The notes under the pieces: generated by a model
Told to the model about the DNA's origin: nothing
The model's database searches: none
The model's input: the letters and a program-made list of their open reading frames with translations, nothing else
Position numbers and translations under genes: made by a program
Origin: Salpingoeca rosetta
Lineage: Eukaryota; Protista; Choanoflagellata
DNA: 41,094 bases
NCBI GenBank assembly: GCA_033442325.1
Contig: JAWQFM010000027.1
Coordinates: forward strand, 582,222 to 623,315
Direction: 5' to 3'
Part shown: piece after piece, positions 22,261 to 29,763 of the stretch
Position numbering within the stretch: the stretch's first letter is position 1
How the letters are laid out: the number at the start of each line of letters is the position of its first letter

Positions 22261-25200
22261 TCAGATTGCGTCCATATCGTCCTCGGGCTCGGACATGTGT
22301 CCGCCCTGGTCCGCCAGCATCCGCCGCAGCTGCGCCAACTTCCCGCGCTCCCTGGTGATGGTGGTGATGGTGGTGGTAAATACGGCAGTGAATGAGGGTG
22401 GTGGTGGTGGTGGTGGTGGTGGTGCAATGAAACTAACAAACGAACGCTGATACTCTTTGCCCAAAGTCGCACATCACATGCACTTCCCCGGCACCGTCAC
22501 CACCATTGCTATCGGTAACTCACTCGTCAAGCGCCTGCTCAAGACGAAGGGCCTCGACCTGACTGTCCATCACCAGCCGCTTCAGCTGCACTTCATTCAG
22601 CTGCGCAGCATCCTGCGACACAACGGGTATGAAGATATGAGTGTGTGCGTGTGTAGGTGTGTGTGTGTAGGTGTGTGTGTGTGTGTAGGTGTGTGTGTGT
22701 GTGTGATTGCGTGTGAGAGGTTTGCGGGCAGTGGAGGGGTGTGCACACATCACTTTGAGCATGTGGCGCAGCATTATGCGAACACACACACACACACATG
22801 CACACGGCGCGAGTGCTAACCTCGACCATGGCGCGTGCGAGGTTGTACGAGTTAACAGCCCGAAGGGCATCGATGAGCTCATGGGATGCGGTCGTCAGCG
22901 TGCGGCTGTTGCGACGCACATCGTGCATCGTCTCTGTTGTTCGCGCTTCCTCTGCAGTTGCGATCACCGTGGTGGTGGTGATGGTGGTGATGGCGATGGT
23001 GGTGAGTGAGAATACTGGTGACGGCAGCGGCGAGCGTGATGTTGATTCAAGAGCAACAAGGGGGACGGACTGTAATTTGACAGACCAATGTATTCACACA
23101 CACACACACACACAAGCACACACACACATACACACACAAGCACACACACATACACATGCAAGCACACACACACGCACACACACACACCGCTTGTCATTGA
23201 GGTTTGAATGAGGATAATGAGCTGTGCAGAGGAGGCAGCAAGGTTTCTGCAATGACAAGGCGAGCGAGCGAACGAGTGATGAAGGTGCAAATGCTGGAGT
23301 GAATGGACAGCTGGCGCTTTGACGAAGACGCAACAACAAGATGGAGGCGTGCATTAACTCACGCTTAGGCACACACACACACACACACACGCGCGCACAC
23401 AAATCACACAAATCACACGCGCACACAAATCACACACGCACACACAATGCATTCATTGCACCGCATCACATGACCCACTGCTTCCACCACATCGCCTCCC
23501 GACCATATTTCTCTCACCTGACAGAGACTTGCAGCCGTTCAAACTGCGTGCCATCGGTGAGGAATTGTCGCAAGCACTCCAGCCAGACTGGAAGCGTGTC
23601 CAACACCGCGCTCACAACGGCCTCAAGTGCCCCAAACCTGTGGAGCAAGCAGTCATGGGCCCGTCAGTCGTGCGAATGTGTATGCATGCGCGCTTGTATG
23701 TATGTGTGTGTGTGTTCGTGTACGTGTGTCTAGCAAGAGTGTATGCGTTTACGTTGTTCCATTCCCCACACTCAGTGCCAGAATCATTCAAGACACACAC
23801 ACACACACACACAGGCACACATCGCCAAGCCCCAGTACAGTAAGCAGACAGCACCCACCATCTGTGCGCGCGCAGCGTTGAGATGGTCGTGCCATCTGTC
23901 GTCTCGCGAACTTGTTTCTATCGACACGAATCAACAAGCAGCGGCGATGTCGGTGGTGGTGATGGTGGTGGTGATGAATGAACAGGCACATGCATTCATC
24001 CCTTCTATCGCAGCATGCACCAACATGTCGTCATCATCGAACAACGTGCTCATCATCACCTTGACTCCACCATCATCACGCGTTTACCTTCAGTGTTGTG
24101 ATGGTGTTGATGAGAGACTCCACAGACTCAAGCACAAACACCGCAGATTTCACAATCGCCTGAAGAAAATGTGGAAGTGTGGGCAATGGTACACAGCAAA
24201 ATGCACACATGCACATGTAAGTATGCGGCAACAGTCACACTCATACCCACAAGTGCACACACACAACACACACACACACACACACACATCCACGCACCTA
24301 CACAACACAGACATCCACGCATTCGCACCTCGTTGCGCGATTGGAGTTGTTCGTTGGACCGTTGCGCAATCGCCTTGAGATCCTCCATGGAGGCAATGGC
24401 GTCCTTCACAGCTGCGTGTGCACGACCAACTTCCTCTGTCAAGTGCGCTGGAACTTCCTTCCGCTGGTCGGACGCGCGCTCCAGCCGCTGGTACACGGCA
24501 TTGAGACGACTGCACACGTCGTCAACGCGTGGTGCGGACACAGCGCCAAAGTTTTCGCTGGCGCCTCGCATGTCACTCAGGCCTGTGTTGATTGCAGTGT
24601 TGGTGACGTGATGTGATGTGACAGCGGTGATGTGTGGATATGGTGGTGGTGATGTGATGGAGGTGGGTGAGGGTGAAGAGAAGAAAAGGAGTAACAAGAA
24701 GAAGAGCAGGGGAAACAAGAAGAGCACACCATGAGCTGCATTGTCCATCACATCGATACCGAGCACGCACGTCATTGCTGCACGCCACACGGCATTTCAT
24801 CACAAGGCCACACCCTTACACACACACACACACACACACACACACACACACACACACATTCACGCACAAACACACATTCACGCACACACACACAACACCC
24901 CGCAATTTAATGCACACAAACTACAACAACACACGCAATCCAAAACACACAAACACCCAACACCACTTCCACCAGCATGCATGCATTACAATCGCCCGTA
25001 CGTTCGTGCGCCTCCTTGACAAATGCATCCACCGCTTCGTATGTGTTGCGCACATCTCCCATGCACGCCTCGGCATCTCCCATCGAGAGTTGCGTCAGGG
25101 CGCCCTGGCACGCGCGCACGGTGATTGCGTACTGGCGAACAAAGCCGGCAAGCTTCCGCCCCAACTCATCCCGGCTTCGCGGGGTGCCCTATTTGTGTGT

Positions 25201-28200: not shown

Positions 28201-29763
28201 GGTCTTGACAGCCAGGTCCTCCTCCACGATGCCAAGCTCGCTGCTACCGTGCCTCTTCCGCGGCACGCGCGGCGATGCCGTTGCTGACGTGGGTGTCGAC
28301 GACGGTGCTGATGTGGGTGCTGAATTGGGTGCTGAGGTAGGTGGCGTTTCGTTTGAGCTCGACGCATCGCTCTGGAAAGTATCGCTGTCCCCGCCATCCA
28401 TGTGCGAGGCATCAGAGCCATACTGCCGCTGCTGCTGTTGTCGTTGCAGCAGCAGCTTCTCCTCGCGTCGCTGGCGTCGGCCCTCCTTGCGCTGTGCGGA
28501 TTTCACGTGCCGCTCTGCAGATCGCACCGCCTTCTCCGCCTTGTGGTGCGAGTGAACCACCGCTGTGTGCGTGTGTGTGTGTGTGTGTGTGTGTGTGTGT
28601 GTGTGTGTGTGTGTGTGTGTGTGTGTGTGTGTGTGTGTGTGTGTGTGTGTGTGTGTGTGTGTGTGTGTGTGTGTGTGTGTGTGTGTGACGATGTGTGCGT
28701 GGAGGTATGTGTGTGTGTTTTCATGTTGGTCAGGTGTGGCGTGAGGAGCTGAGGAAGAGGAGGCAAGTTTTCGTGTGTTGCGATTTGAGAGCCTGTCAGT
28801 CACAAACGTGCGTGTACCACCCAGGTGCAGCACAACAGAACGCACGCGCAAGTGGCACTCACATCTGAGCTCCCTGCGTTCCTCAAGGATATCTTGCCAC
28901 TGCTTGCAATACTCTTCATACCCTGTGCACACGAGGACAATGAGGCGAATGCAAGTGGAAGGAAGATAGAGAGCGAAGACTCAACTCACACTTTGCGGGC
29001 AGTTCTAACACTTTGTACACACACATTCACAAACACACGCACACATTCACACACACACGCATACATTCACACACACACACACATTCACACACACACACAC
29101 ACATTCACACCACGCACACACATTCACACATTCACACACACACACATGGACACACCTTGGAGGTACTGCTGGAAGCTTGACACGAGCTCTGATTCCGATG
29201 CCTTCATCTTCTTGACAAATTCGCTGATGGGTGGGGACTGGCGCTTTGCCCAATACTCCAAGCCCCTGATGACACGATGGTCGAGAACAAAGCAAGTCCA
29301 ATCAATCCCAGACGAACGCGTGTCCATGTGCGTTGTAAACGTGTGATATGTGTGTGATTGTGAGTGTGGTTGTGCATGTGTGTGTGTGGTTGTGAGTGTT
29401 AGTGATTGTGAGTGTGTGCGGGATCGTCAACATTTCCACTGTTCCACGTTAAACCCCTCCCCCTTATCTCATACCCACACACACACACACACACACACAC
29501 ACACACACACACACACACACACACACACACACACACAAACACACAAACACACAAGCACACACACACACACACACACACACACACACAAACACACAAGCAC
29601 ACACACATGCACACACACACCAGCTTGCCACTCACGAGAGAAGACGGGTATCTGAGTTGATGAGAGCATTGAGAGATTTTGCAGAGTGTTTGAGCTCCAG
29701 CAGCACGTTCTTGAGCGAGCCATCCTCCTGCAGCTTGTTCAGCTGTCGGCGAATCAAAGACAT
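22261..29763 (-). CDS. 802-aa protein with an N-terminal Pil1/Lsp1-like BAR domain, a coiled coil and a C-terminal Sla2/HIP1-type I/LWEQ (THATCH) domain. 20 exons.
   Basis: Exons 29763-29636, 29265-29156, 28922-28863, 28562-28174, 27911-27841, 27436-27402, 27106-26957, 26672-26567, 26341-26260, 25916-25861, 25660-25501, 25188-25002, 24582-24329, 24159-24088, 23917-23859, 23637-23518, 23246-23188, 22951-22821, 22612-22524, 22351-22261. All introns are GT-AG and phase-compatible, totalling 2409 nt. The C-terminus HRWFGALEAVVSAV..FERLQVSVRNLAASSAQLI..QLKRLVMDSQVEALRLEQALDEERGKLAQLRR matches the I/LWEQ blocks. The BAR assignment rests on a recalled alignment and is less certain. Confidence 0.85.
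27594..27712. repeat. Intronic tandem duplication with a 60-bp period
   Basis: (CA)n-ctgcgtacaaagcaaaaccaccacgacaaacgcaca appears twice, 60 nt apart. Confidence 0.9.

Follow-up and report, generated by a model that had tools for sequence, protein, structure and literature searches.

A Sla2/HIP1R-type actin-binding tail joined to a predicted BAR-like head in the choanoflagellate Salpingoeca rosetta

To our knowledge, all I/LWEQ proteins that have been studied reach the membrane by one of two heads, the FERM head of talin or the ANTH head of Sla2/HIP1R. A gene of the choanoflagellate Salpingoeca rosetta, PTSG_13008, raises the question of what else can stand at the membrane end of such a protein. 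The gene occupies positions 22261-29763, on the minus strand, of a stretch of 41,094 nucleotides (assembly GCA_033442325.1, contig JAWQFM010000027.1, positions 582,222 to 623,315 of the forward strand), which is the window referred to throughout. Choanoflagellates are the closest living relatives of animals, and their feeding collar and phagocytosis depend on the coupling of actin to the membrane. An earlier sequence-only reading had proposed that the locus encodes an eisosome-type (Pil1/Lsp1-like) BAR domain fused to the actin-binding domain of Sla2/HIP1 in place of ANTH. Our analysis leads us to think that PTSG_13008 is probably a lineage-restricted relative of the Sla2/HIP1R-type membrane-actin adaptors, in which a BAR-like membrane-facing module has replaced the ANTH head.

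The gene itself is secure. Its coding sequence begins with an ATG at 29763, ends with a TGA at 22261 and is split into 20 exons by introns that are all GT..AG; joined, the exons give 2409 nucleotides and 802 amino acids, and all of the peptides picked out in the sequence-only reading are present in the product. The rebuilt product is letter-for-letter the NCBI entry “hypothetical protein PTSG_13008 [Salpingoeca rosetta]”, so that the single 802-residue frame proposed from the bare sequence is also the public one. In UniRef the protein is named I/LWEQ domain-containing protein, and an exhaustive protein search with exon 13 returned an 802-residue database protein that is 100% identical at residues 513-596. 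The annotated gene, on scaffold GL832989.1 of assembly GCA_000188695.1, spans 7503 nucleotides, which is the length of 22261-29763. PTSG_13008 is a real gene that is already annotated, with a head that is uncharacterised.

Are head and tail parts of one message? The RNA evidence comes from the raw reads of two RNA-seq runs and from the transcript-like contigs of two further runs, the RNA status of these contigs being a guess. Reads were placed over 22600-28570, with the (CA)n tract at 28571-28687 lying outside, and microsatellites led to dropped joints at introns 5, 7, 11 and 17. Exact joints were found for ten introns (4, 6, 8, 9, 10, 12, 13, 14, 15 and 16), and seven more introns are supported indirectly. 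Read ends at 28562 (22 reads in one run), 26674 and 22820 continue into exons 3, 7 and 19, respectively, the first of these supporting intron 3 without an exact joint, and contig pieces show exons 5, 6, 11, 12 and 17 at spliced spacing, with 106 nucleotides between the pieces in the case of exons 5 and 6. One transcript-like contig of 2112 nucleotides runs from the 3' untranslated region to exon 7; another of 1685 nucleotides reaches from exon 12 to a point 456 nucleotides past exon 4, which leaves room for exons 3 to 1 plus a 5' untranslated region. The two spliced contigs overlap, and between them they cover both head and tail. The introns are free of reads, and the first mate lies on the plus strand in nearly all pairs, as fits minus-strand RNA in a standard stranded library. 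PTSG_13008 is transcribed as one spliced, expressed mRNA, and the proposed joining of the exons is borne out by RNA-seq. It is extremely improbable that the 802-residue frame is an artefact of gene modelling that fuses two neighbouring genes: we found no point in favour of this beyond the fact that introns 1, 2 and 19 come from the public gene model only, with no direct reads, whereas the exact joints, the read ends and the overlapping contigs from beyond exon 4 to the 3' untranslated region all speak against it, as do the collinear layout of a transcriptome protein in Microstomoeca roanoka and an independent environmental genomic contig that carries head and middle exons collinearly.

The tail is of a known kind. 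I_LWEQ (PF01608) is the sole Pfam domain found on PTSG_13008, at residues 636-784, where its score of 65.6 bits lies above the cut-off of 27.5 (E 6.8e-18; model positions 3-148 of 151) and the match covers all four conserved blocks. The sole PDB sequence match is the THATCH core of HIP1R (HIP12), 1R0D, which aligns with residues 552-697 on chain residues 11-160 at an E value of 1.1e-6; as this alignment begins at residue 552, it includes the upstream helix, and together with the Pfam score it agrees with the claim of the sequence-only reading that the THATCH region is complete. Judged by its sequence, the segment 552-784 is a complete HIP1R-type THATCH (I/LWEQ) domain, for which binding of F-actin is predicted.

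To which lineage this tail belongs can be read from the other I/LWEQ copies of the genome, which lie on contigs C2, C4 and C7 and bring the number of I/LWEQ genes in S. rosetta to at least four. On C4 (1242130-1249951) an ANTH match lies about 7 kb upstream of the I/LWEQ domain, and this is therefore the canonical Sla2/HIP1 gene; a further ANTH match stands on the same contig at 1769895-1770005. On C2 (1042243-1042683) there is a full-length I/LWEQ match with no ANTH nearby, a copy that we take to be talin. In local tblastn the PTSG_13008 tail is 34% identical to the ANTH-linked copy over 116-127 residues, and it has no BLAST match to the ANTH-less copy, which makes it a tail of the HIP1R/Sla2 type. 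A talin-type tail was considered and rejected, as there is no match to the C2 copy, the putative talin. The THATCH part of the protein thus most likely comes from the Sla2/HIP1 lineage. HIP1_clath_bdg, another Pfam family, gave no match when residues 1-320 were searched at E<=10.

What, then, is the head? ANTH (PF07651) has no match at E<=1 on the whole protein and none at E<=10 on residues 1-320, and the head models of two orthologues, described below, both consist of three helices; the statement of the sequence-only reading that ANTH is absent is upheld on both counts. A diverged ANTH head was rejected on the strength of these models of three long helices, which are not the ANTH solenoid, together with the lack of a Pfam signal. 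The head is an N-terminal domain that is conserved and yet goes unrecognised by current family libraries.

That it is conserved can be seen from three relatives. A transcriptome protein of M. roanoka in EukProt (P0005, 925 residues) is collinear with PTSG_13008 over its full length at 35% identity, and I_LWEQ is its only Pfam match (58.8 bits). An environmental contig (ENA ERZ17098661, NODE_769707, 4112 nucleotides) carries on its plus strand, at 489-4052, collinear exons for residues 1-626, in segments that are 34-49% identical to PTSG_13008, and ends before the I/LWEQ domain; head and middle are therefore linked in a third organism. The contig is probably from an uncultured choanoflagellate, and its introns are much shorter than those of S. 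rosetta. The third relative is a second gene of S. rosetta itself, on the minus strand of C7 at about 1737927-1747277, which has the same head and then the I/LWEQ tail in the same order; over 49 residues, one of its exons shares 49% identity with the M. roanoka head. Between its head and its tail the paralogue bears an SH3 domain (SH3_1, E 3.7e-9), and it lacks the long insert at the tip of the head, whereas PTSG_13008 lacks the SH3 domain. The locus of the paralogue contains runs of N, which are assembly gaps. The M. roanoka orthologue and the second S. rosetta gene confirm that the architecture exists elsewhere in choanoflagellates. In an alignment of the four sequences the invariant head residues include W48, I56, Y77, W88, E97-L98, K107-A108 and K110 in the first half and K233, E236, H242, L245, F295, Y297, W312 and G315 in the second.

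Other searches say little about how widely the family is distributed. Searches of a protein word index, for which the entire protein, the two-sequence alignment and residues 590-790 served as queries, recovered nothing but the query itself; they missed even the M. roanoka orthologue and are uninformative on distribution. The exhaustive search of representative proteins used exon 13 only and gave six matches, which leaves the taxonomic range essentially unsampled. Joint Genome Institute metagenomes, scanned once for patterns from the head and once for patterns from the tail, yielded no relative.

The predicted structure of the head is what suggests a BAR domain. An AlphaFold2 model of residues 1-320 has a predicted local distance difference test score (pLDDT) of 69 overall and of 70-95 in the helix blocks, and consists of three long antiparallel helices, 14-49, 56-147 and 208-274, with about 200 ordered residues. 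Between the second and the third lies an insert, 148-207, which is disordered in the model (pLDDT 40-45) and corresponds to the insertion that the sequence-only reading had remarked on. The three helices recur, at 26-61, 66-158 and 175-250, when the M. roanoka head is modelled independently (pLDDT 73). Helix 2 is strongly basic in its distal half. The tip insert, encoded in the exon at 28174-28562 of the window (minus strand), is rich in Ser, Thr and Pro and stands between very basic helix ends; its length varies, the M. roanoka protein having a much shorter version and the C7 paralogue hardly any of it. This loop could be regulated by phosphorylation.

When these two models were compared with the PDB by Foldseek, the lists consisted almost wholly of BAR, F-BAR or I-BAR domains, among them the F-BAR domain of Rgd1p, Lsp1, FAM92A, SNX1, FCHO2, Pil1, IRSp53, arfaptin and amphiphysin, with best E values of 0.067 and 0.004. 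In VIA, a structural search of 48,161 chains, the top 17 rows for the S. rosetta model and the top 8 for the M. roanoka model are BAR-superfamily domains at Z 10.7-12.7, values to be read with the tool's own warning that a Z below about 13 may reflect a common arrangement of long helical bundles. The S. rosetta model is led by the IRSp53 I-BAR domain (12.5), ACAP1 (12.2), arfaptin (12.2), Lsp1 (11.9), SNX5 (11.6) and FAM92A1 (11.5), and the M. roanoka model by Dictyostelium IBARa (12.7), Lsp1 (12.6), IRSp53 (12.4), a second Lsp1 chain (12.3) and FAM92A1 (12.2). The language-model neighbours in the ESM Atlas are FCH, BAR, FAM92 and arfaptin clusters, at weak similarities of 0.77-0.82.

The head was also predicted as a pair. 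With two copies of residues 1-320, each of three runs gave an ipSAE of 0.69, whereas the highest-scoring of three controls had 0.00; at least 58% of the contacts recur between runs, and the pLDDT of the partner is 66 or more. In benchmarks of this mark, 21 of 30 microbial proteins solved as same-chain pairs pass and none of 23 single chains does, and for eukaryotic proteins the counts are 17 of 29 and none of 30. The confident contacts set helix 1 against helix 1 in antiparallel fashion (34 with 34, 27 with 41, 20 with 45) and add helix 3 at 234-277. In this predicted geometry each of the two distal tips carries the insert and the basic end of helix 2, an arrangement of the BAR kind. The head is thus predicted to form a BAR-like antiparallel homodimer, and the three-helix, BAR-type dimer that the sequence-only reading had envisaged finds support in the AlphaFold2 models, in the BAR-dominated lists of Foldseek and VIA and in the dimer test. 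On these models a BAR-like head in place of ANTH is plausible, and the head would belong to the BAR superfamily by fold only, with no subfamily assigned.

If this is so, a mechanism suggests itself. The dimeric BAR-like head, perhaps aided by a short basic N-terminal helix, would bind a curved acidic membrane; the central charged helical region would extend the dimer; and the two THATCH domains of the dimer would grip F-actin. PTSG_13008 would in this way couple actin force to a patch of curved membrane, as Sla2/HIP1R does at endocytic pits, with the site chosen by curvature or charge and not by the co-assembly of ANTH with phosphatidylinositol 4,5-bisphosphate (PI(4,5)P2) and epsin. A part of the central region, residues 315-395, is charged and heptad-like by eye, and in the model of the orthologue the helix continues there.

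Several points weigh against a BAR-like head, and some of them also speak for a different view, in which the head is a generic antiparallel three-helix bundle that serves dimerisation or the binding of a partner (compare the Rac-binding domain of MiniBAR, bMERB and SH3BP5) and not the membrane, its likeness to BAR domains being the mere common geometry of long helical hairpins. At the level of sequence there is no BAR signal: no family of the BAR clan in Pfam (BAR, BAR_2/3, FCH, IMD, Arfaptin, FAM92, Vps5, Pil1) matches the head of either orthologue at E<=10, and neither phmmer nor hmmsearch against PDB chains, with each orthologue and with their joint profile, returns a BAR chain at E<=10. 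The structural scores are themselves modest. No Foldseek match reaches E<=0.001, and VIA Z values of 11-13 are in the range of any long helical bundle; non-BAR bundles such as PrgA, SipB and designed proteins stand at about 10, with the best BAR domain only about 2 higher, and MiniBAR, bMERB, SipB and designed bundles together span 9.7-10.8. When the AlphaFold2 model is searched against the ESM Atlas, it has no BAR neighbours, only unrelated coiled coils with template modelling (TM) scores below 0.5. The head models are based on an alignment of two sequences, the pass in the dimer test may reflect solved BAR dimers that the predictor has memorised, the middle region at 300-550 is without an assigned fold, and the binding of membrane and of actin are both predictions. 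What the view of a generic bundle has to explain is that BAR-superfamily domains dominate the top of all four PDB lists and cover the whole domain, not a sub-bundle, that the predicted dimer, like BAR dimers, is antiparallel and formed via helices 1 and 3, that helix 2 has a strongly basic distal half, and that the domain sits exactly where Sla2/HIP1R has its membrane-binding head. We regard a generic bundle as unlikely but as a serious rival, and a BAR-like head remains our preferred reading.

Within the BAR superfamily, the more specific idea that the head is a true but highly diverged member of the Pil1/Lsp1 (eisosome) family, which would place eisosome-type scaffolds in Holozoa and tether them here to actin, has structural points in its favour. 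Chains of Lsp1 and Pil1 are always among the best structural matches: of the seven Lsp1/Pil1 chains in the S. rosetta list, Foldseek gives six a probability of 0.96-1.00 and 8qb8_A one of 0.91, and in the M. roanoka list the probability is 1.00; TM scores by target go up to 0.60. In VIA, Lsp1 is aligned with the S. rosetta model at Z 11.9 (root-mean-square deviation (rmsd) 3.5, 149 residues aligned, 14% identity) and with the M. roanoka model at Z 12.6 (210 of 214 residues aligned, rmsd 7.2). A domain of about 200 residues fits the size of Lsp1, and for the ESM Atlas's own model the Pil1 cluster is the first structural neighbour (TM 0.80 by hit, 178 residues). The mean pLDDT of that Atlas model is only 0.54, however, and within the Atlas Pil1 is not a neighbour of our own AlphaFold2 model; the language-model neighbours include FCH, BAR and FAM92, not Pil1. 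The kinship is also not visible in sequence. The Pil1 family of Pfam, PF13805, has no match on the protein at E<=10 and none at E<=1 in a six-frame search of the genome, where exon splitting lowers sensitivity, and the Lsp1 and Pil1 structures in the PDB set (Lsp1 3PLT and Pil1/Lsp1 8QB7-9) are not matched at E<=10 by either orthologue or their profile. Since the Pfam and PDB searches are blank, the ungapped Pil1 alignment of the sequence-only reading escapes detection by standard statistics.

Nor does structure single Pil1 out. Lsp1 ranges over Z 11.4-12.6 in VIA, I-BARs over 12.5-12.7 and FAM92A1, ACAP and arfaptin over 11.5-12.2, so that I-BAR, ACAP, arfaptin, SNX-BAR and FAM92 all lie within one Z unit of Lsp1; rmsd is lowest for SNX5 and FAM92A1, and the structural alignments with Lsp1/Pil1 are 8-14% identical, the same as for other BAR families. 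The comparison with Lsp1 that the sequence-only reading had suggested thus came out in two ways, as Lsp1 and Pil1 are indeed among the top Foldseek matches and yet no closer than other BAR families, and the label “eisosome-type” is not supported, because the sequence searches are blank and the structures tie. True Pil1/Lsp1 membership is, in our opinion, quite doubtful, and the preferred reading is that of a BAR-like head with no closer affiliation.

How these parts are laid out over the exons can be followed along the minus strand. Exon 1 (29636-29763; residues 1-42) encodes the short N-terminal basic, amphipathic helix, predicted with low confidence at residues 2-10, and most of helix 1. Exon 2 (29156-29265; 43-79) holds the end of helix 1, the conserved Trp48 and the start of helix 2, and shares in the conservation across the four sequences, and exon 3 (28863-28922; 80-99) continues helix 2. 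The long exon 4 (28174-28562; 100-229) contributes the basic distal half of helix 2, the disordered Ser/Thr/Pro-rich tip insert and the start of helix 3. Helix 3 goes on through exon 5 (27841-27911; 230-252), which is joined to exon 4 by RNA at 27911|28174, and exon 6 (27402-27436; 253-264; joint 27106|27402), to end in exon 7 (26957-27106; 265-314), which also encodes a low-confidence linker with the conserved Phe295, Tyr297 and Trp312, and with Gly315 at its border. The putative coiled coil, charged and heptad-like, begins in exon 8 (26567-26672; 315-349; joint 26341|26567), continues in exon 9 (26260-26341; 350-377), which has RNA joints, and is followed by exon 10 (25861-25916; 378-395; joints 25916|26260 and 25660|25861).

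The middle region, which has no Pfam match at residues 396-511, is divided between exon 11 (25501-25660; 396-449), which is 42% identical to the environmental orthologue, and exon 12 (25002-25188; 450-511; joint 24582|25002), likewise without a family match. Exon 13 (24329-24582; 512-596) includes the upstream helix before the THATCH core, and exon 14 (24088-24159; 597-620; RNA joints) belongs to the core. The Pfam match begins in exon 15 (23859-23917; 621-639; RNA joints) and passes through exon 16 (23518-23637; 640-679; RNA joints), exon 17 (23188-23246; 680-699; joint 23246|23518), which has the NLAASSAQL block, and exon 18 (22821-22951; 700-743), from whose read end at 22820 the reads continue into exon 19 (22524-22612; 744-772) with the last I/LWEQ block, the C-terminal helix. 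Exon 20 (22261-22351; 773-802) completes the I/LWEQ domain, up to residue 784, and adds an acidic tail and the stop codon.

Microsatellites of the (CA)n/(TG)n type lie in most of the introns that were inspected, and several exceed 100 nucleotides; examples are found at 28571-28687, 26728-26900, 29476-29620, 25194-25268 and 25725-25800 of the window. The neighbouring annotated genes, at about 30300-40000 and 10900-21900 of the window, encode two proteins of 860 and 1362 residues without a Pfam match as well as MR_MLE (enolase superfamily), His_Phos_1 (histidine phosphatase) and LRR proteins, with no evident functional link to PTSG_13008.

A BAR-like head on a THATCH tail, if true, would be a third type of head for I/LWEQ proteins, beside FERM and ANTH, and the shape or charge of the membrane would set where actin force acts, in place of a receptor tail or of co-assembly with PI(4,5)P2 and epsin. 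We know of no BAR-I/LWEQ protein described so far. Our literature search found no paper that describes a BAR-THATCH (BAR-I/LWEQ) fusion, that names PTSG_13008 or that pairs Pil1 with Salpingoeca, in agreement with the statement of the sequence-only reading that the architecture was not known to it from the literature. One may speculate further, though we give the idea rather little credence, that there is a small adaptor family, so far only in choanoflagellates, in which a self-dimerising, curvature-sensing BAR scaffold is fused to a force-bearing THATCH anchor, represented in S. rosetta by two genes or more, one of which adds an SH3 domain. Should the head after all be of true Pil1/Lsp1 descent, eisosome-type scaffolds would extend beyond fungi and algae and would be wired here to actin, for example at the base of the collar, phagocytic cups or other furrows. 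Since transfection and genome editing work in S. rosetta, localisation and knock-out tests are feasible; a profile built from the head would annotate the family.

Comparison with known systems shows how the protein combines features that are otherwise found apart. With Sla2, End4, HIP1 and HIP1R it shares a THATCH domain with its upstream helix, which is closest to 1R0D among PDB chains and to the ANTH-linked C4 copy within the genome, and also the order of a membrane-facing head, a charged helical middle and a THATCH tail. It differs from them in lacking ANTH and in having as its head a predicted three-helix, BAR-like dimer, and outside the last approximately 115 residues it has no BLAST-level similarity to the canonical Sla2/HIP1 gene of S. 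rosetta; nor was a region for binding clathrin light chain found in it. Talin has in common with it an I/LWEQ actin-binding domain with the C-terminal helix, whereas the FERM head and the rod of talin are absent from PTSG_13008. Pil1 and Lsp1 are among the top structural neighbours of the head and have a similar domain length, but they do not match it in sequence, are structurally no closer than five other BAR families and have no actin-binding tail. The BAR superfamily as a whole (SNX-BAR, FAM92/CIBAR, arfaptin and ACAP, I-BAR, F-BAR) resembles the head in its predicted fold, in the approximately 200 ordered residues, in the antiparallel dimer formed via helices 1 and 3 and in the basic distal region. 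PTSG_13008 is set apart from it by the lack of a match to any BAR-clan profile and by the 60-residue disordered insert in the loop at the tip between helix 2 and helix 3, and, in the literature searched, by a THATCH domain, which no BAR protein was found to bear.

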